Positions 20,436 to 64,000 of a stretch of 64,000 nucleotides of DNA are shown here, piece by piece. Both the position numbers and the translations under genes were made by a program. Positions within the stretch are counted from its first letter, which is position 1; every line of letters begins with the position of its first letter. The notes under the pieces were generated by a model that saw nothing but the letters and a program-made list of their open reading frames with translations, was not told where the DNA came from and did not search any database. The DNA lies in the sequence record NC_048047.1. One strand, written 5' to 3'.

Positions 20436-20441
20436 GCATCG

Positions 20442-21809: not shown

Positions 21810-21810
21810 C

Positions 21811-25928: not shown

Positions 25929-25946
25929 ACCCTGCAAGGAGCACGC

Positions 25947-26684: not shown

Positions 26685-26686
26685 TC

Positions 26687-28751: not shown

Positions 28752-28761
28752 GGGAAACCCC

Positions 28762-29367: not shown

Positions 29368-29920
29368 TCCCGCTCCCGATCGTCCAGGATACGCATGAGA
29401 CCAAGACCTACTTCGTCGTCCACGCCCAGGCCCGGTCGACCAAGAGCGGCGCTGTCTGGCCGATCTATCTGGCCGGCGACCGCGCGTTGCGCGGCTGGGC
29501 GCAGTATCCCTACCACATGACCGGAGACCAACCGTTTCGGTTTAAGGCTGTGGAGGAGGCCTGGGCCGCCGCCGCCAAGGACACCGTCGGCTACAAGGTC
29601 GAGGGCGTCGTGGTCACCGAGCACATCGTGGAAACCCGCACCACCCACAAAACGATCGATCACCGATGCACCTAGATGTAAAACCCGAACTCTGCCTCAT
29701 GGGCGAGGATGTGGAACGCGACCTCGACGTCCACGGCGGCTTCGACTGGATGGTGCTGTCCTATGCCCAGACCATCTTCTCCCATCCCGTCTTCGTCGAG
29801 CGTTTCGACACCGAGGAGATGGCGATCTTCGCTGGCCGTCAGCGGCTCGAAGAGGGCTATCGCCATGTCGACGTCGTCAAGCAAGTCGCCTATTCCTGCA
29901 TGCCCTGGATCGAGGACTGA
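29364..29920 (+). CDS. two hypothetical proteins (29364-29675, 29666-29920)
   Basis: coupled ORFs. Confidence 0.65.
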
Positions 29921-29923
29921 CCC

Positions 29924-30676
29924 ATGAACCTCACTCGTCGCGCCATTCTCGCCTCCGCTGGCATCGCCGGCGCCTTCTTTGTCATGCCGGCCATCGCCAA
30001 GGCGCCGATCAGCGAGCGCGTTGAAAAGTGGCTGGCCCAGATGGTCTATGGCGGCAACTTCTCGGTGCATGTCCAGGCGGTCGATCCCGAAGTGCTGGAA
30101 GCCTTGCGCGCTGGCGCGCTCGCCGAGCAGCATGACGCCTGGGTCCCGGACAGCCCCTCCAACGTCGTCACCATCTCCCGCCGCGACATGGTCCGCCTGA
30201 CGCCGCGCGGCGTCGAGATGGGGCAGGTGTTCCTGGCCGCCCGCCTGGGCCGGCATGCACGCTTCCTGATGGCCCAGGCGATCGACTCCAAGCCCGCCAA
30301 ACAAGGCTACGCCTACAAGGTCCTGCGCGGCAGCGAGGCTGAGAACGCCAACTTCAAGCGCGTGTTCGGCAAGCCATATTCCAACGGCGCCCTGCCGCGC
30401 ACGGTGTTGACGCAAGAGCAGGCGGCCAGGGGCGACTGGCGCATGGTCCTGCTGCGCGAGGCCTATCTGCGGCCCGCCGCCGCCGGTTCGACCCTCATCG
30501 CCCTGGAGCGCACGCCGGCAGGCGAGGACTGGTATCAGGCTTGCCTGATCGACCAGCAATACGATCGAGTCGAGGCGCGCCTGAAGAAGATGGGCATCAA
30601 ACCCGTCTTCGACATGAACAGGGCCGAGGCCTTCGCGGTCAACTTTGGTCGCGGCAAGATCGTGGCCGCCGGATGA
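29924..30676 (+). CDS. Tat-signal protein, paralogue family member 2
   Basis: MNLTRRAILASAGIAGAFFVMPAIAKA; VLTQEQAARGDWRMVLLREAYLRP. Confidence 0.7.
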   Translation: MNLTRRAILASAGIAGAFFVMPAIAKAPISERVEKWLAQMVYGGNFSVHVQAVDPEVLEALRAGALAEQHDAWVPDSPSNVVTISRRDMVRLTPRGVEMGQVFLAARLGRHARFLMAQAIDSKPAKQGYAYKVLRGSEAENANFKRVFGKPYSNGALPRTVLTQEQAARGDWRMVLLREAYLRPAAAGSTLIALERTPAGEDWYQACLIDQQYDRVEARLKKMGIKPVFDMNRAEAFAVNFGRGKIVAAG

Positions 30677-37946: not shown

Positions 37947-40137
37947 GTGCTGCAAATGGTGAAACTGGACCCGCGCATCGGCGTGCTTCAGACCGAACGC
38001 GGCATGGCGTTCTACGCCTATCCGAACGGCTATGACGCGCCGGCCGTGCGCGGCAGCCGCGAGAAGGTCGAGTACGCCCTGGGCGTGCGCCGGCGCTTCA
38101 ACGCCCTGGGTGATGTCCCCTTCGGCCCCTACCTGACCGTCTATGACGTCGAGGTCACGGTGCGCTCCTGGTCGCATGGCTATCTGCGTTTCACCCGCGA
38201 GCCCATCCGGTTCGAAGGCATCCGGGCGCCGTCCAAGTCGGCCGCCAACCAGGAGGCCCGTCGCCTGCTCAAGCACGGTCGCGGCGGCCTGCCGTCGTGC
38301 AAGGCCACCTTGCGAGAAAACGGTTGACAGCCTGCTAGGCCTATGCGAGAACACCTCGAAGACGGCGCCTGCGCCGCCCGCAAGGACCCCTAAGATGACC
38401 TTCGACCGCACCATCACCGCCGAGTTGGGCCAGTATGCCGAGGGCGAGTTCGAGCGCTACGGCACGCGCCACTACAACCTGCGCGCCGACGACTATGGCT
38501 ATGCCCTCGGCTATCTCAAGCACGAAGCCGACGGGACCTGGATCGTCTACAACTTCCACCGCGATGCGATCGGCATGCCGTCGTGCCCGATCACGCCCTT
38601 CCCGACGCAGGAAGCCGCGCTGGCGTGGTGCAACGAACGCTACCTTGCCGCCCACGCGCGCGCCGAGGCCATGGTCGCCCAGGCCATGGAAATCATTCGC
38701 GCCGATCTGTCGCCGGTTGAACGCTACGAGAAGGACTGGGGCAACTCCGCCTTGACCATCGTGGTGTCGCTGATCTTCCCCTGCGAGCCGGGTGAAGGCG
38801 TCTCGCTGGCCCACGTCGTCCATGCCCGCATGACCATCGTCGAGGCGCTGACCGCGCTCGACATCCTGGCCGAGAGCAAAATCTACCCGTCGATCGTCGG
38901 CCGCGTCATGGACTTTGACCCGGTGGGCAAGCACCTGGGCGGCGCCTTCTGGCGACGTGACGCCTTCGGCAGCCATCCGGGCGACTACCACCTGCTGGGC
39001 TGGCGCTCGATGCGCAACTGGAACGCCTACCTGCAAAAGAAGAAGGAGAAGGCCGCGTGAAAAAGACCCACAAGCTCACCAAGGAAGAAGCCGACCTGAT
39101 CCGGCGCGTGGCCTGCAACAATGTCGGCCGAGGCCGCGTCAAGCTCGAAGTCAACCTGCGCGAGGACAATCACGGCAACGCCGGCTACAACATCCTGTCC
39201 ATGGTCGGCGATCACGACATGACCGACACCGCGCCCTGGGGCCGGTTCCGCAGCCGTGTCTTCCCGCTGGTCGACGGCGCCGCTATGCTCGACGTAGCGA
39301 TCCAGTCCTCGCACGAAGATGGCGACGGTCCCGAACTCCTCTCCCATGTCAAGCCGGTCTGGGAGGCCGGCGTGCTGGTGCGGATCGAAGGCTATGATCG
39401 GGTCCTATGGCAGCGCGCCGCGTGACCGAACCCGTCATCCCGACCCTGACGCTCCTGGCCATGCTGCGCGACGCCCAGACGAGCGTGATCCTGTCGTCGG
39501 GCCGCGAACTCAGCTACATCGACGCCGACGTGCTGATCAAGGGCGTGGCCGAGTACGTCAGCGACTACACCGTCCTCTGGCTGGAAAAGCTGCTGCTCGG
39601 CGTCCACATCACCGAGGCCGAGCACATCCTGTCGGCCGCGCAGAACGACCCGGAATTTCCGAACTATGTCGCCCTGCGCGTCTGGGCGCATCGGGTCAAC
39701 GGCAAGTGGAACCGCGACTTCATCAAGATGCTGCGCGCCCGCGCCACCACCCAGCCGCCCGGCGTCACCGACATGCTGGCCCAGGCCGATCCCGATGACT
39801 GGGCGGTCAAGCGCTACCTGGGCAACGGCGACGTCATCGTGCGCCTCACCACCAGCGGCGTGATCGCCGACGTCGAAGCCGTCAAGCTGGTCTGACCATG
39901 GCTCGCAAGCCCAGGCTCGTCAGCGTGCGCGGCAAGGCCGAACTGGTCGAGGGAACCAAGGTGCGCTTCATCTGCCCGCTGGGCCACACCCAGGTCGAGG
40001 ACCTGGGCCGAAAATCCCTGCCGCTACCCAGGCGCTACTCGGCCGAGGCGGTCAAGCGGCTGGCCCACTGGTGGCGCCAGGGCGTGACCTTCGACTGCAA
40101 GCGCTGCACCAAGGATCAGGCCGCTTCGAGACAGTAG
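37947..40137 (+). CDS. hypothetical genes (37947-38327, 38395-39060, 39057-39425, 39422-39895, 39898-40137)
   Basis: promoters TTGACA at 37887 and 38324; coupled ORFs. Confidence 0.7.
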
Positions 40138-49615: not shown

Positions 49616-52432
49616 GTGACCCTCGCTTCCCATAAGACCGCCCTCTCGCCCTATCCCCATGAGGAGCGCGCCAAGCGCCGCGCCGGTGTGCGCCGTATGC
49701 GCAAGCTCGCCGAGGACATCCGGGCCGATCACGTCCGGGACCGCGAGCAGGACCCCCAGCGCGCGGCTGCCGCCACCGCCATCACCGGCGTGACCGAGCC
49801 CCATCACCAAGTCGCCCTGCTGGAGCAGATCGCCGACAAAATCCAGACCGAGCACCTGGACAAGCTTTATCCGCTGGCCCGTGACGACTTCTCCGCCTTC
49901 TGCGAGGTCATCAGCCCCGAGGAGCCGCCCGAGAGCCCCTGGCACATCTGGCTGACCAACTTCCTGCAAGAGGTCGAGCTTTCGCCCGATCTCAACAAGG
50001 TGGTGCTCAACGTGCCGCCCGGCCACGCCAAGCCCCTGCACGAGGACACCCTGGTGCTGATGGGCGATGGCGCCTATCGGCCGCTCAAGGACATCCAGGT
50101 CGGCGACCGCGTCTGGACCCACGCCGGCCGCGCCCGTCCCGTCACCGCCGTCCACGAGCAGGGCAAGCTCTCCACCGTCGAGATCGTCACCGAGGCGGGC
50201 CGCATTGTGCGCGCCGCCCCCGACCACCCGTTCCTGGTCAAGCTGGGGACCAAGGACGACGGGACCCCGATCGCCGAATGGATCAACGCCGGCGACCTGC
50301 GGCCGGGCATGCCCGTGGTGATATCGGCCCACAAGCCGCCGAGCGTCGAGCACCGTCACTATGACGGCGACCACACCACGGCCGAGACCTACAACAAGCC
50401 CCTGCGCCGGGCCGAGGCCCTGGGCTACATGGCGCTGGGCGGGGCGCTGCACTGGCAGAAGTCCAAGACCCAGGTCACCCCCTCGCCCGACTTCCGTCTG
50501 TCGACCCACAAGCGCGCGCTGATGAAGCACATCGTCAAGCTGGTCAAGACCGGCCTTGGCCACCACATCAGCGTCTGCAAGGTCGCCTCCCAGAACACCT
50601 TCGTCGCCCGCCTGGGCGTCAAGGGTTTCCGTGATCTCAACGCCGGCGACTGGTTCACCTACGAGCCGGAGAAGCGCCGCGTCCCGCCGTGCATCTTCAC
50701 CGCCAGCAAGGACGAGATCGCCGCCTTCCTGGGCGCGGCCTTCTCCCTGCGCGGCGAGGTCATCCGCCGGCTGCGGGGCAAGAACCTGCGCCTCTACCAT
50801 CGCTCTATGGACCTGCTTCTGGACGTGCAGAAGTTGTGCGCCACGCTAGGGGCCGCAGGAAGCCTCGACAGGGGCGATCCTGACTTCGGGGGCCGACCCT
50901 GCTTGAACCTCGACTTCGCCGCTGTGGCAGCCCTCCAGGCGGCCGGAGTGAGCTTCGATGGCGAGACCGACACCGACCTCGTCAATCAGCCGCCCTTCAC
51001 CATGCTGATCCCGCGTCCGAGCGACACCGACGCGGTCGTCTCGGTGCTGCCGGCCAAGAAGGCCCGCTGCCTGTGCCTGACCGTCGAGGAGGACCACAGC
51101 TTCACCGCCGAGACCCTGGTGGTCAAGAACTCCACCTATGCCTCGCGCCTGTTCGTGGCGTGGCGCCTGGGGCGTGACCCCAACCAGCGCATCATCGGCG
51201 GCGGCCACAGTCAGAACTTCGTCGAGAACGAGTTCTCCTCGAAAATCCGCAACATCGTCACCTCGCCGGAATTCCAGCGCGTCTTCCCTGGCATCACCGT
51301 CGACCACCAGACCAACGCCAAGCAGCAGTGGGCGATCGCCGGCTACAAGGGCCAGTACGTGGCGCGCGGCGTGGGCCAGGGCATCCACGGTTTCCGCGCC
51401 ACCTTCATCTGCGTCGATGACCCCTACTCCAAGATCGAGGACGCCAACAGCCCGGTTCACCGGCGCAAGGTCGAGCAGTGGTTCGACGCCGACATTGGTT
51501 CGCGCGCCCTGCCCAACTGCAAGACCTTCCTGATCATGACCCGCTTCCATGGTGAGGATTTGACTAATCACCTGGAGGAGATGAACAAGGTCCTCCCCGA
51601 CAATGCAAAGTGGAAGATCGTTACTGTTCCGGCCATCTGCTTTGATGAAGAAACAGACCTTCTAGGCCGCAAAATCGGTGAGTTTTTGTGGGATTACTAT
51701 CCGTTGTCCTACTTCGTTGACAAGAAGATTCAGTTTGGATTTCTGGGTTTCGCCCTCACCTACCAACAGGTGTCGTCTGCCGCAAATCCCGACAACATCG
51801 CCAGCAAGTTCAACTTCTACGATTCCCTGCCCCACGAGTCGCCTGAAGTTAAGGCCCGCGCCCCTCGCGACCAGTTCGGCAGGCCGCAGATTAACGAGGG
51901 TGATTTTTACCGGCGCACCATCGTCTCGGTCGATACCGCCTCCAAGACCACCGAACGCGCCGACTACACGGTCGTGCAGGTCTGGCGCGAGGATTTCCGG
52001 GGCAAGCACTACCTCGTCCACCAGGACCGCCGGAAGGTCGAGTTCAACGACCTGATCTCGATGATCGAGGCGCCGGCCATCAAGTACCGGGCCGACCAAA
52101 TCCTCGTCGAGGACAAGGGCTCGGGCACCCAGTACCTGCAAAACCGGGGCTCGACCGACAATCAGAAGCGTCAGGCGCCCTGTCCGCTGGTGGCGGTCAA
52201 TCCTGGCGTGGCCGGCAAGAGCTTCCGTTTTGACGGTGTCACGCCCATGATCGAGGGCGGCGATGTCTGGCTGCCCAAGGATGCGCCCTGGATCGAGCAG
52301 CTTCTGGTCGAGATCGGCCAGTTCCCCGACAGCGCTCACGATGACCAAGTCGACGCCATGAGCCAGTACCTCAACCACGCCAAGAAGAACCGCACCCGCT
52401 ACGGCAGTCGCAAGATCACCAAGCACACGTAA
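49616..52432 (+). CDS. terL: terminase large subunit containing an intein
   Basis: Walker A PPGHAK/ST split by the intein; GVGQGIHGFRA, ICVDDP Walker B, LIMTRFH, nuclease SVDTA, LVEDKGSG, HDDQVDAMSQ. Confidence 0.95.
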   Translation: MTLASHKTALSPYPHEERAKRRAGVRRMRKLAEDIRADHVRDREQDPQRAAAATAITGVTEPHHQVALLEQIADKIQTEHLDKLYPLARDDFSAFCEVISPEEPPESPWHIWLTNFLQEVELSPDLNKVVLNVPPGHAKPLHEDTLVLMGDGAYRPLKDIQVGDRVWTHAGRARPVTAVHEQGKLSTVEIVTEAGRIVRAAPDHPFLVKLGTKDDGTPIAEWINAGDLRPGMPVVISAHKPPSVEHRHYDGDHTTAETYNKPLRRAEALGYMALGGALHWQKSKTQVTPSPDFRLSTHKRALMKHIVKLVKTGLGHHISVCKVASQNTFVARLGVKGFRDLNAGDWFTYEPEKRRVPPCIFTASKDEIAAFLGAAFSLRGEVIRRLRGKNLRLYHRSMDLLLDVQKLCATLGAAGSLDRGDPDFGGRPCLNLDFAAVAALQAAGVSFDGETDTDLVNQPPFTMLIPRPSDTDAVVSVLPAKKARCLCLTVEEDHSFTAETLVVKNSTYASRLFVAWRLGRDPNQRIIGGGHSQNFVENEFSSKIRNIVTSPEFQRVFPGITVDHQTNAKQQWAIAGYKGQYVARGVGQGIHGFRATFICVDDPYSKIEDANSPVHRRKVEQWFDADIGSRALPNCKTFLIMTRFHGEDLTNHLEEMNKVLPDNAKWKIVTVPAICFDEETDLLGRKIGEFLWDYYPLSYFVDKKIQFGFLGFALTYQQVSSAANPDNIASKFNFYDSLPHESPEVKARAPRDQFGRPQINEGDFYRRTIVSVDTASKTTERADYTVVQVWREDFRGKHYLVHQDRRKVEFNDLISMIEAPAIKYRADQILVEDKGSGTQYLQNRGSTDNQKRQAPCPLVAVNPGVAGKSFRFDGVTPMIEGGDVWLPKDAPWIEQLLVEIGQFPDSAHDDQVDAMSQYLNHAKKNRTRYGSRKITKHT
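50033..51130 (+). mobile_element. 366-aa intein (Pro1 start, block-F Cys, class-3-like) with degenerate LAGLIDADG region
   Basis: PLHEDTLVLMGDG...IQVGDRV (block A), APDHPF (block B), CLCLTVEEDHSF (block F), VVKN/S end. Confidence 0.9.
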
Positions 52433-52607
52433 CCGCCCCAAGTCGACGATAGCCGACATCTCCAGGTGTCGCCGATCGACGACTTTGACGCCTGCGGGGC
52501 GCGTTAACCATGTTTGTTTACCCTCTTTGGCCCGTTAACCTTAATAAAATCCCAGGTAGTACCAGGTATGGCCGGTACTACCAGCGGTAATACCGGAGAA
52601 AAGCCCT

Positions 52608-53177
52608 GTGTTTCGCTATCTGACCGCCCTTTTCGACCACATCGTCCACTACAAGCTCGCCCCGGCCCATCGCCGCATCGCCCCCGAGGGGCAGGCGGCC
52701 CTCGACCGCCTCAAGGCGGTTGATCGCCAGATCGAGGCCGGCGTCTACCAAGGCAGCGACGTGCGCGGCACCCGCGCCTACGCCTTCCACCACATCCCGC
52801 CGCGCGAGCGCCTGATCGCCGCCAACAAGGGCCGCGACGTCACCGGCCTTACCCCGCGTCGCGAGCGGCGCCTGTCGGTGGCGGGCAAGAAGCCCTGGCA
52901 GCCGCTGCTGGTCACCGAGCCGCCGCGTGATCCCGAGGAACTGGCCCGTGAGCGTGAGGATGAGGCCAGCACGTTGCGCGCCAGCGCCGAGCATCTGGCC
53001 AAGCGCGCGGCCTCGCGCCTGATGCGCCAGCGGCTGGGCGAGCGCTATGCGCCTTACCGTAGCCTGGGCCAGGAGGTGCTGAGCAATGTCGGCCTGGACG
53101 CCACCTGGGTGAGGGCCGGCTATCAGCAGGCCATCGACGATGCTCACCCGATCGCCGCCACGCCGGACGAGGTCTAG
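52608..53177 (+). CDS. hypothetical basic protein
   Basis: 189 aa ORF with typical codon bias after TerL. Confidence 0.65.
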   Translation: MFRYLTALFDHIVHYKLAPAHRRIAPEGQAALDRLKAVDRQIEAGVYQGSDVRGTRAYAFHHIPPRERLIAANKGRDVTGLTPRRERRLSVAGKKPWQPLLVTEPPRDPEELAREREDEASTLRASAEHLAKRAASRLMRQRLGERYAPYRSLGQEVLSNVGLDATWVRAGYQQAIDDAHPIAATPDEV

Positions 53178-53286
53178 GGACCCTGCGTCCAAGCCCTTGG
53201 GGACCCTGGCTGAAAAACCGCCAGGGACCCTGGACAAAACAGGTCAGGGACCCTGCGCCAAAACGGTCGGGGACCCTGGCCAAAAT
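53177..53286. repeat. five GGGACCCTG repeats, 23-24 bp period
   Basis: copies at 53177, 53200, 53224, 53247, 53270; last four followed by an A4-5 tract. Confidence 0.9.
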
Positions 53287-53664
53287 CGCTTCCAGCCCAG
53301 CCGGAAATTCACATCCCCATGCTCCTTTCCCTCACCAGCCTGATCGGCGCCCTGCTGATCGCCGCCGTCGCGGTCTTCGCCCTGTGCGGCGAGATCGACT
53401 GGTGCATTGACGGCCAGTGCGGCTCCTGGCGCGGCCCCTTTGCCCCGCCCGGTCCTAGTTCATCGCTTTCGTGACAGGTCTTGATTTCCTTGGGCTTTTT
53501 GGCCTGCTGTCACGATTCAAAAGGTTTCACGCGTGCCCCGAGCCCTGAAAATCCACCCAAAATGGGCGATTTTGATCGATCTCTGGCTCTGGGCGGCGGT
53601 CCGCGTCTACGCATGGGTCCACAATGCGAGGCCGGAGGCCGGTGCGCCACCCACCAAGTCGTGA

Positions 53665-53694
53665 GACATGTCAAGCCCCCTCGCTTGACATGTC
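53665..53694. repeat. perfect 11-bp inverted repeat
   Basis: GACATGTCAAG-8 nt-CTTGACATGTC. Confidence 0.8.
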
Positions 53695-54103
53695 ATAGTT
53701 TGTCCGAAAGGTGACAGCGTCGGCGCAAAAGAAATCGCGTTGACTCCGCAAACCCAGGCCAGCCTTGACGTTGCGCCATTCTCCGCAGGTTTTGCGGTGA
53801 TTGCCCCGGCTATTCGCCGCACGTGTCAGCAAAACCGCCTATGTGACGTCCTGCTTGACATGGCTCAAGTTCCGTGGCACGGGAAAGGCTCGGGCGTGTG
53901 CTCGGATGGAAAGCTCCGCTGTCGGCTTCAAGCCAAGGCCTGGGTGGAACACCAGCGCTAGACCTGCCCGCCGACGCCCTCGACCCCATGCGATCGCCGG
54001 CGGGGGACCACCGCCTTCGCCTGCCACACCCGGCGAGGATCGAAGGCGAGAAACGCCCACCAGAGCCCGCCGCCCTGGTGGGCGTTTTGGTGTCCGGCCT
54101 TGA

Positions 54104-54298
54104 ACTTGACGTCGGGCCATTTCGCCGCCGACTTGACGTCGGATCATTTGCCCGGCCGACTTGATGATCGCCCATTTCGCCTGGACTTGACGCCGGCGCA
54201 TTTCAAATTTGACGCGAGCGCATTTCCTTCCCAAATTTGACGAAAGGCCATTTCAAACTTGACTTGACGTCATTTCATTTCTTGACCTGACGCCATTC
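54104..54298. repeat. array of TTGACG-N6-CATTT units
   Basis: units at 54106, 54133, 54161, 54187, 54209, 54237, 54259, 54264, 54282, plus an outlier at 53765. Confidence 0.9.
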
Positions 54299-54314
54299 CA
54301 TCCCGCTGGCCGGG

Positions 54315-54530
54315 TAAGGTTAACGGCCGATTAACCATGTGGCGAGTAAGGTTAATTTTCAAGGTTAACGCGCATGGTGAACGAACAGGGTTAACGCGCC
54401 TTAAGGTTACCCGTTAAGGTTAACAGGCGTTAAGGTTAACGGTTAGGGTTGAAAATTAAGGTTAACCCGGCTCAAGGCCCTACCGGCGGCCGTTAAGGTT
54501 AACGCCAGGGGCAAAATCGTTAAGGTTAAC
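54315..54530. repeat. cluster of TTAAGGTTAAC-like repeats including a TTAA-N7-TTAA box
   Basis: full copies at 54414, 54430, 54456, 54493, 54520 plus partial copies; TTAA-N7-TTAA at 54320-54334. Confidence 0.85.
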
Positions 54531-54533
54531 GCC

Positions 54534-54620
54534 CAAAACAGCGAAAATCAGCAAAAATCGTCCAAAAATAGCGAAAATCAGCGCAAAATAGCGCTTTTTA
54601 GGCCGAAAATCACCGAAAAT
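54534..54620. other. phased A-tract region (predicted bent DNA)
   Basis: repeated A4-5 tracts about every 10-11 bp (CAAAACAGCGAAAATCAGCAAAAATCGTCCAAAAATAGCGAAAATCAGCGCAAAATAG...). Confidence 0.75.
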
Positions 54621-54929
54621 CCGGTTTTCTGACCCATTTTAGGGTTAATGTCGCGCCCTAACCCGATTTTGGGCGACACCCAGGCGAACGGGCGCCGGCC
54701 GGGTCGTGATCCCCGGCCGGTGGGTCAGTGGAGCAGCCAGAGCAGAAACGCCAGCGCCGCCAGTGACCAGCCGTTCAGCAATTTCAGGGTGGGCGCCTCT
54801 CTCGTCTGCCGTGGCCGCTCGCCACCCCTCATTCATCGCATACAAGAAAACTGTTGCCAAGCCCCAAAGATCGCTTGACAGCATAAAAGCCCAATGCGAC
54901 AAGAGGCCATCCAAACGGGAGACACCCCA

Positions 54930-55502
54930 ATGACCGAGCAAACCCTAGACCTTCTCTATCCGGCCCTGATGCTGGAGCAGAAGATTCCCCACCGCGAAGG
55001 CATGTTGCGGCTGGCCATCGTCCTGCGCGACTTTGGCCCCAAGGCGCCCCATCGCTACGTCACCCACCTGCGGATCGAAAACCCCGTACCGGGCTCGGAA
55101 CACGCCTTCACCTACAGCTATGACCACGGCACCTATTCGGCCGACCTGCGCCGCGCCACCACGGTCTATTTCGAGCGCGTCGCCGAGCGGGTCATGACCG
55201 CCATGGTCGCCCTTCACGACCTGCCCGAAGTCGCCCCGCCCCCGCCGACCGTCACCATGCCGCTCGAACTGGCCCAGACCGCCTATGGCCTGATCGATGA
55301 CAACGAACTGGACCTGTCCAAGGCCTGCGGCAACGTCACCTTGGTCGAGGCCGCCATTACCGGGCTGGCGGGCGTCCTGGGCTCGCTCAAATACTTCCGC
55401 GACGTCGAGGAAGGCAACGCCAAGCTTCTGGAGGCCTATGAAGCCGCCCAGGCCGCCCGTGACGCCGCCCTGGAGGCCGAATCCGAGGCCGAAGAGGCCT
55501 AA
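54930..55502 (+). CDS. early-type hypothetical protein, cassette 1
   Basis: promoter TTGACA at 54875, RBS GGGAGACACCCC. Confidence 0.8.
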   Translation: MTEQTLDLLYPALMLEQKIPHREGMLRLAIVLRDFGPKAPHRYVTHLRIENPVPGSEHAFTYSYDHGTYSADLRRATTVYFERVAERVMTAMVALHDLPEVAPPPPTVTMPLELAQTAYGLIDDNELDLSKACGNVTLVEAAITGLAGVLGSLKYFRDVEEGNAKLLEAYEAAQAARDAALEAESEAEEA

Positions 55503-55509
55503 AAGGACG

Positions 55510-55536
55510 CGCCCAGGCCTCCCCGGCCTGGGCGTT
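55510..55536 (+). terminator. hairpin terminator
   Basis: CGCCCAGGCC-TCCCC-GGCCTGGGCG-TT. Confidence 0.65.
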
Positions 55537-55573
55537 GCCCATTCACCAGGCGTTAAGGTTAACCGCGAAATTA

Positions 55574-55617
55574 GTGCGAGAAATCTGTTGACACGCATTG
55601 AGGCCCTATGCGAGAAC
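55574..55617 (+). promoter_or_regulatory. cassette promoter
   Basis: GTGCGAGAAATCTG-TTGACA(55588)-CGCATTGAGGCCCTATGCGAGAAC. Confidence 0.85.
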
Positions 55618-55646
55618 AAAGCTCCACTTCATGAGGAGCGCCAAGC

Positions 55647-56303
55647 ATGGCCCTGCCCGATCGCCTCTTTGTTTCCACCGACGGCGCGCTTTACGACACG
55701 GCCGCAGAGGACTGGAGCCGCCGCGCGCCCGTGCGCCGCCGCTACAATATCCTGACCAGCGAGGTCACCGATATGCAGGACGTCAAGGCCGCCCTGCGCC
55801 ATGGCCCCTACGCCTTCCCCGGCGGCTATCCGCACTATTTCGTCACCCGCGACGGCGTGGCCCTGTCCTTCGACAGCGTGCGCAAGATGCTCTATCAGGT
55901 CGCGGACGATTTTCAGCATGACGCCTCGACCGGCTGGCGCATCGCCGCCATCGTCCCCAATTTCGAAGACGACGATCTCGTCTGCGACCACAGCGGCGAG
56001 AAAATCCCCTCGGCCTATGGCGCGGGCGATGAGTCGCAAGACGATGACGCCCCCATGGCCTGGGCGGTCGGCGCCAACGTCTCGGGCTTCATGCCCGACA
56101 GCGAGCCGGTGCATTATGCCGATTGGACCGACGCGCGGCGCGGCCTGATCGACCTAATCGGACAAGCCCGCGAGGCCTACGAGGAAGACTCCGCCGAGGA
56201 CGCAGCTTTCCAGACCATGCTGGACGCCTTGCGCGCCGTGCCCGATGAGGCTGAGTTCAATTGGGGCGCGGTCGGCTATCGCTGGTGGCTTGAGCGCCTG
56301 TAA
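55647..56303 (+). CDS. early-type hypothetical protein (PGGYP motif)
   Basis: SD GAGGAG; FPGGYPHYFVTRDG...NFEDDDLVCDHSG. Confidence 0.8.
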   Translation: MALPDRLFVSTDGALYDTAAEDWSRRAPVRRRYNILTSEVTDMQDVKAALRHGPYAFPGGYPHYFVTRDGVALSFDSVRKMLYQVADDFQHDASTGWRIAAIVPNFEDDDLVCDHSGEKIPSAYGAGDESQDDDAPMAWAVGANVSGFMPDSEPVHYADWTDARRGLIDLIGQAREAYEEDSAEDAAFQTMLDALRAVPDEAEFNWGAVGYRWWLERL

Positions 56304-56308
56304 CCGCG

Positions 56309-56334
56309 AGCCCAGGCCTTCGCGCCTGGGCTTT
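56309..56334 (+). terminator. hairpin terminator
   Basis: AGCCCAGGC-CTTCGC-GCCTGGGCT-TT. Confidence 0.7.
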
Positions 56335-56485
56335 GCCCCGCCCCCTGGGCGTTAAGGTTACCCGCGAAAATAGTGCAAGAAACCTGTTGACTCGCTTTGC
56401 CGCCCATGCGAGAACAGGGCTCAGACGAAACGACGAGACCACAAAGGAGGCCGCCATGAAGTAGCGACAATCTGGAGCACATCTC

Positions 56486-56959
56486 ATGGAAATCTACGTT
56501 GGCCTGCGTGACGATCTGGTTCAGGTCGGGACTCATTGGGAGGACGGGGAACCGGAGTTTGCCCGTGTCATCACGGTCTATCTCCAGGCGCCTGACGGCT
56601 CCCGGATCATCCACGATTACCGGTTCACCACGCGCGGCCCCCAAACCCAGGATGGGGATGGGATGCCATGTTGGCCACAACTCGATATCGAGGCTGTCGT
56701 CACCGAGGCGCAAGCCTTCCGCGACAAGGTGGAAGCCCATCTCAAGGCTGGTGGCCGCATCAAGCGCGAGCATTGGCGCGAGATCGATCCGGCCTACGGG
56801 TCCAGGGCCTATGCCGATCTCGACCAGTTCGGCTATTGGCGCGCCATCGAACGTCAAGGCTGGCGCGACCATGGCGAGAACGTTCCGCCCGATCAGTGGG
56901 ACGCCATCGCCGGTTTTGCCGAACCCAACGGCTGGCCCTTGCCAGACCTCTTTGCCTGA
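56486..56959 (+). CDS. early-type hypothetical protein
   Basis: promoter TTGACT at 56387; SD GGAG. Confidence 0.75.
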   Translation: MEIYVGLRDDLVQVGTHWEDGEPEFARVITVYLQAPDGSRIIHDYRFTTRGPQTQDGDGMPCWPQLDIEAVVTEAQAFRDKVEAHLKAGGRIKREHWREIDPAYGSRAYADLDQFGYWRAIERQGWRDHGENVPPDQWDAIAGFAEPNGWPLPDLFA

Positions 56960-56963
56960 TCCC

Positions 56964-56993
56964 AAGGCCCGCCTCCCCGGCGGGCCTTTTCTT
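56964..56993 (+). terminator. rho-independent terminator
   Basis: AAGGCCCGCC-loop-GGCGGGCCTT-TTCTT. Confidence 0.85.
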
Positions 56994-57006
56994 GACCACC
57001 GCCTGG

Positions 57007-57037
57007 GGTTAACCTTAACGTCGCCTTAAGGTTAACC
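57007..57037. promoter_or_regulatory. palindromic operator containing CtrA-type TTAA-N7-TTAA
   Basis: GGTTAACCTTAA-CGTCGCC-TTAAGGTTAACC. Confidence 0.85.
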
Positions 57038-57145
57038 CGCCCAGGCCGGCGCCCAGGCGAAAAAGATTGCGAGAAACCTGTTGACACGCATGGAAGCCCT
57101 ATGCGAGAACAGGGCACCAATTCAACGCCAGCCGGGAGACACCCC

Positions 57146-58148
57146 ATGGCCCTTGTCACCGAGTCCTTTGTCGTCGATATCGACTGCACCCGCGCCCTGA
57201 CTGCCGCCGAGCGGCGAGGACTGGCCGGCGCCATCGCCCAGGTCCTGGGCGTCAATATTGATCGTGTCGAGCCCGAACCGGGCGGTTTCCTGACCGCCAA
57301 TATCGGCCGCGTGCGCCCGGCCGGCATGGTCGGCGCCTCAGGTCAAGAGGCTCGGATCAAGACCGAGGCCCTGACCAGCCGCGACCATGACGCGCCCGTC
57401 GCCCTGACCCTGGAGGCTGGCGAGCGCGTCGATGTCATCGCCCGCTTCTACTGCATGGCCGATGCTGAGACCTATCTGAACGAAAACCCCGACATCGACC
57501 CGGTGTCGCTGAACCTGGGCTGCTATGGCATTGACGCGCCGTTTGGCGTGGCCAGCGACGCGGACGGCGACAAGCTCCTCTATGAGCTGGGCTATCGCCT
57601 GCACGCCACGGGCGGCGGGTCGTGGTCCTTCACCGATCCGAAGGGCTATCTCTGGGACGGCGGCGGCAAGCGTGAGGCCGTGGTCATGATCGCCCTGAAA
57701 CAAGCCGCCGACGCCGAGGAGGCCTAAGACCATGACCGGTTACACGATCAAGCTCGAAGTTCAGGTCAACCCGGCTGACAGCCTGGAGCAGGCGCGCAAG
57801 GACGTCGAGACCGCCATTATCAAGGCCGATCTTCCGGCCTGGATGGAATGGATGATCATCGACGCCGCGCCCCTGGCGCCGGTGATCGCGCCGGCCACGC
57901 GCTGGGCGACCTTCGTCGGTCAGGCCTGGATCAACGGCCACACGATGGAAGTGGACGACAGCCGCGTGAGCTACGGTGTCACTGACGAGGAGTTTGACGA
58001 AAACGGCGGGGACGAGCCGGCCGACTTCGACGCCCTGGCCCAGGCCGCCCGCGCTCCCGACTGGGTGCGCAACTGGTCAGGCCCCTTCGACATCTACATC
58101 TCGGACATTCCAGACGGGCAGGACCCGGATATTCCGGTTTTCGGCTAA
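57146..58148 (+). CDS. two early-type hypothetical proteins (57146-57727, 57732-58148)
   Basis: promoter TTGACA at 57081, RBS GGGAGACACCCC. Confidence 0.8.
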
Positions 58149-58217
58149 GGGTGCAAGAAAGCTGTTGACAGCATAACAGCCCTATGCGAGAAAGGGTCAT
58201 AGCAAGGAGACACCGCT

Positions 58218-58448
58218 ATGACCCCCAACCCGACCGAAGAGGGCAAGGCCGCCGCCCGCCAATGGCTGGCCAACTCGACCAGCGAATGGGCGCCCGAGCC
58301 CAAGAACCCCTATCGCACCCTGGCCCGGTCGATGACCGCCCGCACCGACGAGGAACGCCGCTGGGACGCGGGCTATCAGCACATCCTCGACCTGGAATTC
58401 CCCGACGACGGCGCCGAGCAGCGCGCCGAACGCGCCTTTGGCTGCTAG
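58218..58448 (+). CDS. small early-type protein, Rmf-like pattern
   Basis: own promoter at 58165; EEGKAAA...KNPY...RRWDAGY. Confidence 0.75.
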   Translation: MTPNPTEEGKAAARQWLANSTSEWAPEPKNPYRTLARSMTARTDEERRWDAGYQHILDLEFPDDGAEQRAERAFGC

Positions 58449-58494
58449 AGAGGTCCGCCGGCTCACCCCGGCGGACTTTCCACCACCGCCCGGC

Positions 58495-58522
58495 GTTAAC
58501 CTTAACGCCGCCTTAAGGTTAC
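58495..58522. promoter_or_regulatory. CtrA-type operator after hairpin at 58451-58480
   Basis: GTTAACCTTAA-CGCCGCC-TTAAGGTTAC. Confidence 0.8.
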
Positions 58523-58601
58523 CCGCGAAAATAGTGCAAGAAAGCTGTTGACAGCATAGAGGCCCTATGCGAGAAAGGCTCATCGAAACGGGAGACACCC
58601 C

Positions 58602-59111
58602 ATGGACGACACCTATCCGCCCCTGACCCCCGGCCAGCAGGACGCCCTGGTCGCCTTCGCTGACCAGCATGGCGGCCTGGGCGAGGCCTGGAAGGAAGCC
58701 CTCGGCGACGCCTGGAGGACGTGCAGCGAGCCCGAGGCGCTCAAGGCCGACCTGCGGACCATCCGCAACACCTATGGCCCCTCCTGGCTCTATGATGAAT
58801 ACGCCTGGGGCTGGCGCCCGACCCTGCCGGCCTGGGAGCGCGCCGGGCGCTGGACCGACACCCCGCCCGAGCCGACGCCGGGCAAGGCCCGCTGGAGCGC
58901 CGCCTTCGACCCGCCGGCCATCGGCGAGCGCGTCCGGGTGACCACCAACGGCCTGGGCTGGGCCAAGGTCACCGGCTACTTCGTCGAAGGCGACTGGCTG
59001 GGCGTGATCGTCAAGCTGGAGGCCCCGGCCGACTGGTATGTCAAACAGAACGGCGGCAACGTCCCCGGCCACAGCTTCGGGACCGAGATCGCCCTGACCG
59101 ACCCCGCGTGA
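58602..59111 (+). CDS. early-type hypothetical protein
   Basis: promoter TTGACA at 58548, RBS GGGAGACACCCC. Confidence 0.8.
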   Translation: MDDTYPPLTPGQQDALVAFADQHGGLGEAWKEALGDAWRTCSEPEALKADLRTIRNTYGPSWLYDEYAWGWRPTLPAWERAGRWTDTPPEPTPGKARWSAAFDPPAIGERVRVTTNGLGWAKVTGYFVEGDWLGVIVKLEAPADWYVKQNGGNVPGHSFGTEIALTDPA

Positions 59112-59162
59112 CCTGGGCGGCCCTGGCTGGGAGACCAGCCGGGGCGACGCCTTGGCCGGCGC

Positions 59163-59193
59163 GGTTAACCTTAAGGCCGCGTTAAGGTTAACC
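59163..59193. promoter_or_regulatory. palindromic CtrA-type operator
   Basis: GGTTAACCTTAA-GGCCGCG-TTAAGGTTAACC. Confidence 0.85.
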
Positions 59194-59292
59194 GCCCGCG
59201 CCCTCCGCCCGGCGAAAGAAAATGCAAGAAAGCTGTTGACACGCATCCGAGACCTATGCGAGAAAGGCGCATCGAACAACGGAGGCCCTTCC

Positions 59293-60371
59293 ATGGCCAA
59301 GCTTTTCAGCGATCTCCAAGACCTTGCCACCTCGACCTATGTCGTGCGCATCGTCGACAATGGCGGCGAGAGCGCCGACCGTTACACGATCGTCACCGCC
59401 GATGGCGACTATTACGCCTACAGCGCCAATCCCTCCCATCCCCAAGGCGTGGGCCTGAGCGGCGAGGGCATCGACCCGCAAGTTCTGGCCGACTGGGTAG
59501 AGCGCGGGCAGGCCATCGACCTGACCATCGGCGAACTACCCGAGGGCGCCGCCCGCTGCCTGCTGGCGTCGATCAACGCCAGCGTCGAGGACTTCCTGGC
59601 CGCTGTCCTGGACCCGACGTCCAACGCCGTGGCCCCGACCCGCGAAAAGGCGGAGATCAACGAGGGCGTCATGGATTGCTTCGGCAAGGGCATCTATCGT
59701 GTCGGCGAGGGTTTCGCCGTGCGTATGGATGGCATGGACGCGGGCGATGATCGCGGACCGTTCATGACCGCTGTCGATGCGGTCAAGGCCACCCTCCCCG
59801 ATGAATACGCCTGGGCGGGCGAGGAATACCTGTCGCCGCGCGACATGACCAAGGTCACGCCCGAAGCCAAGCCGCTCGTCTTGGTTCACGCCCTGGAGGC
59901 CATTCGCGACTATGAATATCAGCGCGACACACCCGGCGCGTTTTTCGACGGCCTGCACAAGGACGACACTGACGCGGGCCTGGGCATCGTGCGCCGCACG
60001 CGCTACCTGTCCAAGGTCACCGGTGATGCGACCATCGTCGGGCTGATCGGCGAGGCGCCGGCTTTCGCCCTGGCCCATGCGTGCCTCGACCAACTGTGGA
60101 CCCTGGCGCAAGAGCGTTGGGAGGCGGGCCAGTGAGCGCCCGCGAACGCCGCGCCCTCGCCGAACTGCTGGCCCTCTTCCATGCCGTCAATAGCGGCCAT
60201 GTCAAGGGCCGCAACCCCTACGCCTTCCCGGCCGTCAAGCTCGCCAACGCGGCGTTGACGGGCGATCCGCTGGACGGGGGATTCCACGTCGCCGAAGCGC
60301 TGGACACCCTGCGCACGTCCGATGGCAAGGCGCTGCTATTCGACACCGAATTTCCCGAAGAAAGCGGTTGA
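59293..60371 (+). CDS. early-type hypothetical proteins (59293-60135 with DNGG..DRYT motif; 60132-60371)
   Basis: promoter TTGACA at 59236; SD GGAGG. Confidence 0.75.
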
Positions 60372-60422
60372 CAGCATAAGGGGCCTATGCGAGAAAGGGT
60401 CATCAACGGAGACACCCCGCCC

Positions 60423-60766
60423 ATGTGGACCGACAAGACGTTCAAGACCCGGACCGCCAAGGAGGCCTGGATCGCCCGCAACGAAGACCGCTATCAGATC
60501 GTCGAGATCGTGGTCTGCAACGCTTACGGCGTGTCCTACAAGCCCCTGCGACGCGTCTACTAGGAGACCCGCCCATGATCCCCGACTCGGTCCGCAACCC
60601 CAAGGACCACTGGACCCCCATCGCCACCCGCGCCGAGGCGGACGCCCTGGCCTTCCGCTACAACCAAGACGACGACGGCCCCGGCCTCTACGAGGTCCAC
60701 GAAAAGGGCGCGACCTTCGCCATCGCCTACTATGACGAAGACGGCGTGTTCTGCGCCTACGTCTAG
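60423..60766 (+). CDS. two small early-type proteins (60423-60563, 46 aa, not in ORF track; 60575-60766)
   Basis: promoter TTGACA at 60368; RBS GGAGACACCCC and AGGAGACCC. Confidence 0.7.
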
Positions 60767-60785
60767 CCGTCACCTCGTCACCTTG

Positions 60786-60823
60786 AAGGCCGGCGCCGCT
60801 CTCCTGGCGCCGGCCTTTTCTTT
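60786..60823 (+). terminator. rho-independent terminator
   Basis: AAGGCCGGCGCC-loop-GGCGCCGGCCTT-TTCTTT. Confidence 0.85.
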
Positions 60824-60837
60824 GCGCCCGGCCGCCC

Positions 60838-60868
60838 GGTTAATCTTAAGGCGGCGTTAAGGTTAACC
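60838..60868. promoter_or_regulatory. palindromic CtrA-type operator
   Basis: GGTTAATCTTAA-GGCGGCG-TTAAGGTTAACC. Confidence 0.85.
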
Positions 60869-60955
60869 CGCCGCATCCCGCCCTGATGCAAAAAACCTGT
60901 TGACACGCATGGAAGCCCTATGCGAGAAAGACGACGAACACGGGAGACACCCCTT

Positions 60956-62402
60956 ATGACCACCGCCACCATCGCCGGCGCCGAACACACGATGATCGGA
61001 CAAGCCGCCTACCGCTCCACCCAGCGCCCGCATCAAGTGCAGGACATGGCCTATGGCGCGTTCCCGGCCGCCACGTCGGACTCGCCCTTCGCCGTCAAGC
61101 CTGCCTGCGGCAAGACCCCGAGCGCGCGCGTGCTGGAGGACTTCGACCCCGCCGACGTCTTCACCATCAAGCCGCGTGATCGCGGCGACGGCTTCCTTGC
61201 GGTCGCCAACTTCGGCGGCTCTGAGGTGTCGTGGATCAGCGTCGCCGGCTATGGCGACACCGAAGACGCCGCGCGCGCCAACCTCATGGCCAAGTTCATC
61301 GACGATCGCGACGGCAAGAGCAAGTTTGGCCCCCATGAGCCGCTCAAGGGCTATGACTGGTCCTATAAGCTGGCGCCCTATTGGGACATGCTGGAGCGCG
61401 AGGCCGCCATTCGCCAGCCCTTCAAGCGCACGCTCTACCTGGGCAAGCTGAAGTCGGGCCGCCCCAATCCCAAGGGCTTTGACGTGTTCGTCGATGTCGA
61501 ATGGACCGGCGAGCGCCTGAGTCTGTCGGGCGTCATCGGCCCCAAGGCCAATGGCAACGCCTGGGGCGGCTGTGGTCAGATCGTCGGCAGTCTTGCGCGC
61601 AAGGACTTTCTGGAGTTCGCCCCGTCCTGGCATTATGGCTCGGCCCTTGACGGTCTGGTCAAGGCCTGGACCCGCTGGCACCTGAACGACATGCGCGCCG
61701 GCACGCCTCGCCAGCAAGAACACCTGCGAGGCTATCAGGCCAAGCGCAACATTGAGCAGGCCAAGGCCGCCGGCGCCCACCATCTCGACGCCACCCGCGC
61801 CGAACTGGCGCGCGTCCATCTGGAGCCCGACACCTGGGAGCGCCGCAACGGCCGGCCCTATAGCTACGGCTCCGCATGGTTGCGCGAGGAGGTCCCCACC
61901 TTCGTTCTCGACTTCCTGCGCAATCTCCCCGCCCCCGTCAAAACCAGCCCCTGGAGGTAACCCGCCCATGGCCATCAACACCGCCGGCCTCGTCGGCAAG
62001 CTCAAGGAAGCCCTGGCCAGCGCGCCGAACCTGACCCTTTGGGCCAAGGAACGCGGCCTCTTCCACCAGAACGTTTCGGCCGCCGCGCGCGGCGACACCG
62101 TGCCGCAAGACAGCATCGCCAAGGCCCTGGGCTATCGGCGCGTCCACGTCCAAGCCTATCTGGCGCCCGGCGAGGCCCTGCCGCTTCTGCCGCCCGGCTG
62201 GGAGGAAGTGGTTCCGGGCTCGGCGACCCCGGTCGACTGGAAGCCGCGCGACAAGACCGCCGAGCCGGCTCATCGCCGCGTTGGCTCGCCTGAGCAAATG
62301 GCGCGCGCCCGCTCGCTTCGCCGGCAGGAAGACCCCGAGGCCGTGGCGGCGGTGCAGGAAGCCCTTGCCGACGCCAAGGCCAAGCTGCGAAAAACCGGTT
62401 GA
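60956..62402 (+). CDS. early-type proteins (60956-61960; 61968-62402 with HTH-like segment)
   Basis: promoter TTGACA at 60900, RBS GGGAGACACCCC; LTLWAKERGLFHQNVSAAARG. Confidence 0.75.
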
Positions 62403-62453
62403 CAGCATAAGGCGGCTATGCGAGAAAGGCTCATCACTTTCTGGAGCAAGCCC

Positions 62454-62891
62454 ATGGCCGCCTTCCTGATCAACACCGATCTCAACGCCCTGGTCGAGGA
62501 CATCGCCTATGACGTCGAGATGGAAGACCGCGCCGCCGAGGAACTCGATGGCATGGACTTTGGCGACCGCTGCTATTACGGCGACCGCGCCTATCATGGC
62601 CAGCTTGAGCTTGCCCGGATCATCGAAGCGGCCACCGCCGCCCATCCCATCCTGTACGCCTAGCAGAGGAGGCGCCGCTTGACCCGTTACCGCACCGACT
62701 ACAGCCAAGACGACGGCAAGACCGTCATTATCGAGGAAGGCCTGACCCGGACCGAGGCCATGCAAAAGGCCGCGATCCTGTCGCGCAAGCACGGGACCGC
62801 CTACGCCGTCGCCTCCGACGACAAGGGCCGCGACACTGGCCAAAGGGTCTATGCTGACGGCCGGTTCAGCTACCAAGACGACAAGTTCTAA
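62454..62891 (+). CDS. two small early-type proteins (62454-62663, 62679-62891)
   Basis: promoter TTGACA at 62399; SD GGAG and GAGGAGG. Confidence 0.7.
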
Positions 62892-62893
62892 GG

Positions 62894-62923
62894 CAAGAGG
62901 CCCGGAGCGATCCGGGCCTCTTG
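62894..62923 (+). terminator. hairpin terminator
   Basis: CAAGAGGCCCGGA-GCGA-TCCGGGCCTCTTG perfect stem. Confidence 0.8.
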
Positions 62924-63050
62924 TCTGTCCCGAGCCGCCCGTTAACCTTAACCCCCTGGGACGGGGCGTTAACCGAACAATCTGCAAGAAACCTGTTGAC
63001 ACGCATCTGAGGCCTATGCGAGAAAGGCTCATCGAACAACGGAGGACGTC

Positions 63051-63758
63051 ATGTCCAAAACGTCTATTGATCCTGTGATCGCCCAAGCCCTCGCCGAACT
63101 GCGCCAAGGCCCGGTCATGGTCGATCATGGCCCCCAAGACCGCACCCAAGTCGTGAGCTTCGGCGCGACCCAAGCCCGGATGGCCAATGTCGCCCTCACG
63201 ATCGAACAAGCCCTGTCGCAAAGCCCCGCGCCCTACGCCCTGGGCTGGTTGCTGGTCACTGAATATGACCGCCTGGGCGACAATTGGGGTGGCTTTCTGG
63301 GCGGCCCTCTCGATGAGGGGCAAACCCTCAAGGACGCTGACGAGGTGCTGGCGTGGTTCCGCGCCACCTTCCCCGAGGACCCGGAAGGCTTTGCCGGGCA
63401 GATGGCCGGCGCCCTGCCCAATGACGAGACCCGCGCCAAGATCGAAGCCGGCTACGCCGAGGCCCTGGCCATCAAGGACACGGTCGCGCCCCTGGCCAAT
63501 ATCGGTTCGGCCGAGGCGGTCGCCGACATGATGTCCACCATGTTCGGCTCTGCTGTCAACGCTGCTCAGGCCCTGGGCTATCTCGTCACCACCCTGGGCG
63601 CGGGCCGCTTCGGCGTCACCCATGACGACGGCGCCACCCTGGCCACGCGCCTGGAAATCGACCACCCGACCCAAGAGGCCGCCGCCCGCGCCGCCCTGGT
63701 CTACCATGTCCAGCACCTGCAAGCCGACACCCTGGCGCTGGCCAATCTGAAGGACTGA
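63051..63758 (+). CDS. early-type hypothetical protein
   Basis: promoter TTGACA at 62996; SD GGAGG. Confidence 0.8.
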   Translation: MSKTSIDPVIAQALAELRQGPVMVDHGPQDRTQVVSFGATQARMANVALTIEQALSQSPAPYALGWLLVTEYDRLGDNWGGFLGGPLDEGQTLKDADEVLAWFRATFPEDPEGFAGQMAGALPNDETRAKIEAGYAEALAIKDTVAPLANIGSAEAVADMMSTMFGSAVNAAQALGYLVTTLGAGRFGVTHDDGATLATRLEIDHPTQEAAARAALVYHVQHLQADTLALANLKD

Positions 63759-63760
63759 CC

Positions 63761-64000
63761 ATGACCGCCGCCGCCTCTCTCTTCGAACAAGCCCAGATCG
63801 AAGCCGCGCAAGCCGCGATCGATCTCAACACCGCCAAGGTCGGGCTGGAAACCGAGGACTCCAGCCCTGGAACCGACCTCTTCCACCTGCTGGGCTCGCT
63901 GCTGACCTGGGCGGACGCCTGGGGCGTGGACTTCGACGACATCCTGTCTCAGGTCCGCGAGCCGGTGAACGTCACCACGACCCTGACCCGCAATGATCCG
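63761..64000 (+). CDS. hypothetical protein, truncated by window end
   Basis: MTAAASLFEQAQIEAAQAAID... open to the end of the window. Confidence 0.7.
   Translation, partial: MTAAASLFEQAQIEAAQAAIDLNTAKVGLETEDSSPGTDLFHLLGSLLTWADAWGVDFDDILSQVREPVNVTTTLTRNDP

Follow-up and report, generated by a model that had tools for sequence, protein, structure and literature searches.

The window analysed here is a stretch of 64,000 nucleotides from Caulobacter phage CcrBL9, in which an array of repeated promoter modules, each followed by small genes, lies in the direct terminal repeat (DTR) of the genome. The 64-kb window matched NC_048047.1 / MH588546.1 with 100% identity (322,272 bp; genus Bertelyvirus, a phiCbK-like jumbo siphophage), and window positions plus 248000 give record positions. 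Identical left and right DTRs of 22,260 bp each are annotated in the record; the right one (repeat_region 300013-322272 in the record) starts at window 52013 within the large terminase gene, as the DTR boundary of phiCbK likewise does (PMC3556154), and its first 11,988 bp (52013-64000, + strand) are contained in the window. The promoter array (54840-64000) corresponds to DTR coordinates 2828-11988, and the window stops mid-repeat. An Rfam scan of 52000-64000 gave no match and a tRNA search gave none within the DTR; elsewhere in the window, at 5142-5295 on the - strand, an adjacent pair of tRNA-Arg genes (anticodons CCG and TCT) was found.

Eleven TTGAC motifs, all on the + strand, mark the module copies in the window (54875, 55588, 56387, 57081, 58165, 58548, 59236, 60368, 60900, 62399 and 62996), exactly where the original prediction had placed near-identical promoters. 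The module measures about 65 bp and is composed of an A-rich block, TTGAC, a spacer starting with GCAT, ATGCGA plus an A-rich stretch, and a leader of about 20 nt with a GGAG-type ribosome site, followed by the start codon. ATGCGA stood 10-16 nt past TTGAC in 11/11 copies, the distance from TTGAC to ATG was 53-59 nt in nine of the eleven units, and a strict 31-nt pattern was matched six times in the window against 0.04 expected. That several units share a ribosome site, as had been proposed, was seen in GGGAGACACCCC (exact in four units) and GGAGACACC (exact in six), both on the + strand and confined to the array region. Seven units (55588, 56387, 57081, 58548, 59236, 60900 and 62996) were composite, with hairpin, TTAA boxes and promoter; three (58165, 60368 and 62399) were promoter-only with neither hairpin nor TTAA, and the first (54875) was preceded by a 1.45-kb non-coding leader. 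The statement that most promoters follow a hairpin and a TTAA operator therefore holds for the seven and not for these four, and the description of the units as insulated applies to 7/11 only. In the composite units a GC-rich stem of 10-15 bp stands immediately behind the stop codon of the gene before it; folded over 60 nt, these hairpins reach -27 to -38 kcal/mol (z -2.8 to -5.0). TTAA boxes begin about 20 nt past the hairpin; a standard terminator scan found no excess of terminators and the U-tracts are weak, hence the custom folding. Counting all modules, about two thirds have a GC-rich hairpin right after the previous stop and then TTAAGGTTAAC clusters.

An nhmmer profile was built from the eleven window copies (E-values 5e-10 to 8e-19) and used for genome scans. 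The full record holds 24 co-oriented copies over 19.5 kb (DTR 2848-22374), 13 of them beyond the window end. With this profile no copy was found in the 17.6 kb past the DTR and a single strong one in the 52 kb before it, i.e. one in about 70 kb of flanking sequence overall; this sole strong copy outside the DTR in the window lies at 38310-38353 (+ strand) at the gp214/gp213 junction. Beyond the DTR end (L002 22600-36700) about 37 tightly packed small genes run on the opposite strand, in a block of different organisation with zero module copies and almost no TTAA. A stringent pattern scan of IMG/VR gave 14 matches in the CcrBL9 genome (2 × 7, all in the two DTR copies), none in its 278-kb unique part, and CcrSC as the only other genome matched. 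Module counts by nhmmer in relatives were 23 for CcrSC, 24 for RB23 and 34 for BL47, and the profile gave no match in the DTR of a related Shapirovirus (Ccr2). About 21% of the 19.5-kb array is intergenic (sum of listed lengths), and each module carries a load of 1-4 orphan genes.

Conservation was counted over 105 copies from four phages with module 6 (58548) as reference copy. TTGAC was retained in 100%, GCAT in 97-100%, ATGCGA in 97-98% and the upstream A-rich block in 76-100%, and the five positions after GCAT equalled the reference in just 28-45%; because these neighbouring spacer positions vary, the conserved letters are under constraint and not merely young. An association between a one-base spacer variant and promoter-only modules (5/7 against 4/16) was too weak to be used. 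Module copies reading TTGACTCGC (window 56387-56395; L002 19365, 20784, 21493 and 22337) contain GACTC, a GANTC site and as such a target of the host CcrM methylase, and this site overlaps the -35. A GcrA homologue is encoded by phiCbK-like phages (PMC3556154, cited in PMC9437464).

Units of the array and their cargo

All features in this section are on the + strand. The non-coding leader before the first promoter (the 1,455-bp gp003-gp004 gap minus module 1) extends over 53475-54859 (DTR 1463-2847). Module 1 (54860-54929; TTGAC at 54875, leader with GGGAGACACCCC) is the weakest copy, with 36.8 bits, and is followed by the orphan gp004 (54930-55502; 190 amino acids, aa). Module 2 (55503-55646) has its hairpin at ~55509-55535, TTAAGGTTAAC at 55553-55563 and the promoter at 55565-55626, and precedes gp005 (55647-56303; 218 aa), which carries the label 'DNA ligase' in RefSeq. 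Module 3 (56304-56485; hairpin ~56306-56336, TTAAGGTTACC 56352-56362, promoter 56364-56425) has an extended leader, which places the ATG of the orphan gp006 (56486-56959; 157 aa) 99 nt past TTGAC. This leader contains a mini open reading frame of two codons (ATG AAG TAG, 56456-56464) with a strong AAGGAGG site. Its ATG is 69 nt past TTGAC, where 53-59 is usual (an excess of at least 10 nt), and 30 nt before the annotated gp006 start; the frame may be the scar of a cassette exchange. Module 4 (56960-57145) comprises a hairpin (56964-56988), a palindrome with four TTAA (57008-57036), the promoter (57061-57120) and GGGAGACACCCC at 57134, and serves the two-gene operon gp007-gp008 (57146-58148; 193 + 138 aa). 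Module 5 (58149-58217) is promoter-only and is followed by gp009 (58218-58448; 76 aa), a cassette absent in CcrSC, RB23 and BL47.

Module 6 (58449-58601; hairpin 58450-58479, palindrome 58495-58523, promoter 58524-58586, GGGAGACACCCC at 58590) stands before gp010 (58602-59111; 169 aa), an orphan with 93-95% identity in relatives, and module 7 (59112-59292; hairpin 59115-59152, palindrome 59164-59192, promoter 59218-59275) before gp011-gp012 (59293-60371; 280 + 79 aa). Module 8 (60347-60422), again only a promoter, overlaps the 3' end of gp012 and leads into gp013-gp014 (60423-60766; 46 + 63 aa), which form the first cassette of the array in RB23, BL47 and C1. Module 9 (60767-60955; hairpin 60785-60818, palindrome 60839-60867, promoter 60880-60932, GGGAGACACCCC at 60942) is followed by gp015-gp016 (60956-62402; 334 + 144 aa), and the promoter-only module 10 (62380-62453), overlapping the 3' end of gp016, by gp017-gp018 (62454-62891; 69 + 70 aa). 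Module 11 (62892-63050) has its hairpin at 62892-62925, TTAA boxes at 62941-62951 and ~62968 and the promoter at 62974-63035; behind it, at 63051-64000, come gp019 (235 aa) and the first part of gp020, which the window end truncates, and the operon and 13 more modules continue in the record. The stop codons of gp012 (60369-60371) and gp016 (62400-62402), both TGA, are supplied by the TTGAC of the module that follows, so that the upstream block of the module also codes for the last residues of both proteins.

The cargo is unrelated and orphan: BLASTP among the DTR cargo proteins found no paralogy, as had been stated for these genes, and Pfam searches with 30 DTR proteins yielded no real match (one sub-threshold chance hit) and no recombinase domain. 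PDB sequence searches for the cargo were empty, and PHROGs returned families of unknown function plus a 'DNA ligase' family for gp005. The ligase assignment of gp005, which derives from the PHROG label only, was rejected for want of Pfam, PDB sequence or fold support; its AlphaFold model (predicted local distance difference test, pLDDT, 73.5) had no Foldseek match in the PDB at E ≤ 0.001, and its homologues were confined to related jumbo phages and metagenome contigs.

Three repeat arrays occupy part of the leader: about ten TTGAC..CATTT units (54104-54301), about nine TTAAGGTTAAC units (54314-54530) and AAATCAGCGA-type units (54535-54621). The DTR of Ccr2 has arrays of these three kinds in the same position (1702-2323); entry, packaging, replication or titration of a regulator are possible roles. 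In the leader at 53665-53694 the terminator scan picked up an inverted repeat with perfectly matching 12-bp arms and a loop of 6 nt (GACATGTCAAGC...GCTTGACATGTC). The gp002/gp003 gap (53200-53285) contains 3.7 copies of a 23-bp unit around the palindrome CCAGGGACCCTGG, with 7-8 similar units at 780-1025 of the Ccr2 DTR; such an array could bind a protein close to where packaging starts.

Cassette order, gains and losses in relatives

Gene order and content were not invariant among relatives, the comparison by which recombination at the shared blocks had been proposed to be checked. The order in CcrBL9 is gp004, 005, 006, 007-008, 009, 010, 011-012, 013-014, 015 and so on, and that in RB23, BL47 and C1 is 013-014, 005, 004, 007-008 plus one extra gene, 006, a cassette that CcrBL9 lacks, 010, 011, 015 and so on. 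When moved blocks were compared between CcrBL9 and RB23, five of the six started in or within 10 bp of a promoter match and the sixth 30 bp upstream of one. At the swapped first cassette the upstream flank of CcrBL9 resembles one RB23 module and the downstream leader and gene another, the partner switch falling within the promoter core. Amino-acid identity between CcrBL9 and CcrSC is a mosaic that jumps gene by gene from 39% to 98%, with several replaced gene bodies flanked by conserved modules. Most of the gene-level differences between CcrBL9 and RB23, amounting to at least 12 gains or losses of genes, map within operons and away from modules.

RB23 and BL47 are ~99% identical and differ by three tandem duplications. 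The duplication of 1.43 kb in BL47 created a hybrid module that follows one parent up to and including the -35 and the second parent from the late spacer on; this change of parent type in mid-module places the crossover inside the promoter. A unit of 884 bp (two promoters and three small genes) between two 82%-identical promoter-plus-gene copies is present five times in BL47 (25283-30167, at the right edge of its 30,174-bp DTR) and once in RB23, C1 and C2, and could be a real amplification or an effect of repeat assembly. The junction of the third duplication (454 bp) lies outside all modules and fuses a stop codon to the nucleotide that precedes a start codon. Phages C1 and C2 showed no further structural variants of the DTR. 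Exact runs shared between modules reach up to 36 bp and are at least 20 bp long in 29/276 pairs, and modules plus 30 bp make up ~70% of the intergenic DNA (estimated from lengths). In sum, whole-cassette moves and two duplications are bounded by modules, in-operon changes and one duplication are not, and independent events are few.

A probable early-gene regulon and its alternatives

At the -35, six of the seven positions of the 7-mer agree with the RpoD motif of Caulobacter (as given in PMC8144410). The best -10 candidate is a GCGAGAAA-type stretch that begins with GCGAGAA 14-15 nt past the 7-mer and fits at five of the seven specified places. The TTAA operator unit is the 11-mer TTAAGGTTAAC, for which 21 matches (at most one mismatch) were obtained against 0.07 expected; 20 lie in the DTR, all 20 in the leader or between genes. 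Two copies often face each other in inverted orientation, and their inner halves then form TTAA-N7-TTAA (5 matches, 0.01 expected), the CtrA consensus (PMC11264516). TTAA density per 2 kb was 3-19 inside the DTR and 0-3 outside, and the distance from the boxes to the TTGAC downstream of them varies from 19 to 117 bp. According to PMC9437464, predicted CtrA sites crowd the DTRs of phiCbK-like phages, two DTR promoters of phiCbK are bound by CtrA and depend on it for activity, DTR rearrangements are accompanied by gain and loss of sites, and CcrBL9 is tabulated with 32 predicted sites in the clustered class; the clustering of CtrA-type boxes is itself already published for these phages in that source.

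We consider it probable that the region is the front half of an early-gene regulon in the CcrBL9 DTR, with promoters for a host sigma factor, a subset of units tuned by CtrA, and modules that double as recombining repeats. From the promoter letters we infer that host RNA polymerase with its main sigma factor would read the modules once a genome end enters the cell, and all cassettes would then be transcribed simultaneously and in two doses, no matter which end is first. Read-through would be limited by the hairpins, and the TTAA boxes would bind the host cell-cycle regulator CtrA and so tune a subset of units. By the comparison with relatives, the modules are probably scattered repeats through which whole cassettes were duplicated, moved and exchanged by ordinary homologous recombination. 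Because all units carry the same promoter, they look like one co-regulated regulon, and the original idea of independently switched units was given up.

Several observations weigh against this reading. No site was returned by an E. coli-type promoter scan, and the -10 is non-canonical and not TATAAT-like; the invariant GCAT beside the -35 has no explanation from a plain promoter. Ten of the 24 modules have no TTAA within 160 bp, and CtrA binding has been demonstrated only for phiCbK sites of another layout (PMC9437464) and not for TTAAGGTTAAC pairs. The in-operon gains and losses and the 454-bp junction lie apart from the modules, the recent duplications are known from one deposited assembly (BL47), and breakpoints at modules may partly reflect the survival of viable junctions and not a hotspot, since modules form most of the intergenic DNA.

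In a tentative alternative, GCAT together with ATGC/ATGCGA 10-11 nt later is an operator for a dimeric regulator of phage or host that turns the whole array on or off at once, the module being promoter plus operator. Both arms are 97-100% conserved over the 105 copies with the five positions past GCAT varying, and they form an inverted repeat of 4-6 bp, with 6 bp in copies reading TTGACTCGCAT. The phiCbK-like phages encode a homologue of T5 A1 that could modify the host polymerase (PMC3556154), as well as an early regulator of the XRE type (PMC10688885), and the shut-off of pre-early genes in T5 offers a comparison for such a switch. However, the sole copy with an altered left arm (56387) shows no compensating change, the right arm overlaps the likely extended -10 and would be constrained anyway, and the regulator remains only postulated.

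The Ccr2 DTR has its own repeated module in 11 copies with a TTAA box in the -35 position, which fits the CtrA-dependent activation measured in phiCbK, the type member of Shapirovirus (PMC9437464); CcrBL9 has a TTGAC -35, with TTAA boxes upstream or absent. At the host pilA promoter a CtrA site at the -35 drives expression and upstream sites reduce and delay it (PMC11264516). As the CcrBL9 boxes lie upstream of a sigma-type -35 and not in its place, they more likely modulate or delay the promoters, by analogy with pilA, than being required for their activity. It is conceivable, though we hold it with reserve, that the same array is wired differently in the two genera, with a CtrA box replacing the -35 and the regulator required in Shapirovirus, and a sigma module damped or delayed by upstream 11-mers in Bertelyvirus, the module being portable and recombining in both; the invariant GCAT...ATGC of the Bertelyvirus module may be a further array-wide switch.

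It is rather unlikely that the TTAAGGTTAAC units are not CtrA sites at all, being bound instead by another factor, either a phage protein or an AT-preferring host protein, or serving the DNA itself in packaging, entry or replication, in which case the dense leader arrays would be the primary site and the intergenic copies secondary. The unit is an invariable 11-mer in which 2 nt separate the half-sites, unlike the N7 spacing, TTAA-N7-TTAA arises only from the inner pair of the palindrome, and about nine units are packed into 220 bp of non-coding leader beside other repeat arrays in a layout common to Ccr2. A CtrA role is nevertheless favoured by a position-weight scan that found 32 sites in CcrBL9 and classed it with phages having demonstrated binding (PMC9437464), and host promoters also have irregular multi-site CtrA layouts, including a half-site spacing of 6 bp (PMC11264516).

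Similarly improbable is that the modules are alike solely through selection for strong co-regulated expression, cassette differences having arisen by illegitimate recombination with a viability filter and the repeats having no mechanistic part. The at least 12 changes within operons and the BL47 junction of 454 bp in no module agree with this, and the 6/6 block ends at modules are not significant against an intergenic-only null, because modules plus 30 bp fill ~70% of intergenic DNA. It is countered by the 1.43-kb hybrid, in which the parent type switches inside the promoter spacer in a near-identical stretch, by the first-cassette swap, which changes partner within the promoter core, and by the 884-bp amplified unit, which spans from one promoter-plus-gene copy to its 82%-identical paralogue. 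The proposal that the regulatory blocks serve as recombination joints stood for the 1.43-kb duplication and the first-cassette swap, which cross in the promoter core, but not as an exclusive route.

Comparison with known systems

Integrons share with CcrBL9 an ordered array of small unrelated cassettes with repeated boundaries, but this is a superficial look, and a site-specific cassette system of that kind, or the 'integron without an integrase' that had been suggested, is highly improbable here, since integrons have an integrase, attI/attC sites and promoterless cassettes under one common promoter, whereas in CcrBL9 no recombinase domain was found in 30 DTR proteins, each cassette comes with a promoter, its boundaries consist of promoter homology and not of attC-like folded sites, and junctions fall at differing points of ordinary homology (at most 36 bp exact).

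The SPO1 host-takeover module and the T5 pre-early genes are, as in CcrBL9, a long terminal repeat of small early genes whose function is mostly unknown (PMC6873191; PMC3556154). Many strong host-polymerase promoters and ribosome sites are found there, and CcrBL9 is alike at the sequence level. The predicted array of units with their own promoters, many bounded by terminator-like hairpins, lies in the place that early or pre-early genes occupy in phages whose terminal repeats are long. No sequence relationship exists between CcrBL9 and these systems, and early timing and host shut-off, shown there, are inferred here. We know of no system of the SPO1 or T5 type with one near-identical module at every unit.

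Also close are the CtrA clusters ('lytic deferment') described for the same phage group, whose sites are intergenic, in the DTR and upstream of orphan genes (Mascolo et al. 2022, PMC9437464); the sections covered here do not describe a repeated promoter module or junctions in it. Since the boxes differ in promoter position in two related genera, different responses are predicted, which sharpens the hypothesis of CtrA-timed infection.

A portable promoter, leader and ribosome site would allow any cassette landing in the array to be expressed at once and in step with the rest, and CcrBL9 would be a natural example of a jumbo phage keeping a large and fast-changing set of orphan early genes expressible. 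The orphan cargo is in addition a candidate list for host-takeover or counter-defence functions in a model bacterium.

The closest functional match to the CcrBL9 module is PeSL of T4-type phages (Arbiol et al. 2010, PMC2839356; Comeau et al. 2014, PMC4122927). In both, dozens of short composite modules with a strong host-sigma promoter and a stem-loop terminator (both predicted in CcrBL9) and a ribosome site are gathered among orphan early genes. In PeSL differences between close relatives are bounded by modules, with recombination between them, and in CcrBL9 this applies to whole-cassette moves and two duplications. The resemblance is functional and not one of homology, as CcrBL9 has an unrelated sequence, a high-GC host and a siphophage background. 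Its modules form one contiguous block inside the terminal repeat, whereas PeSL occur in several hyperplastic regions; its hairpin lies ~45-110 bp upstream of the -35 and not within or next to the promoter as in PeSL, and it adds host-regulator (TTAA) boxes. Promoter and terminator activity and mini-circles have been demonstrated for PeSL, and the CcrBL9 module is known from its sequence. The idea of a recombining promoter-terminator module would thereby be extended beyond T4-type phages, and, if the two differently wired arrays of Shapirovirus and Bertelyvirus are confirmed, the PeSL principle would have had an independent, convergent origin in a high-GC siphophage.

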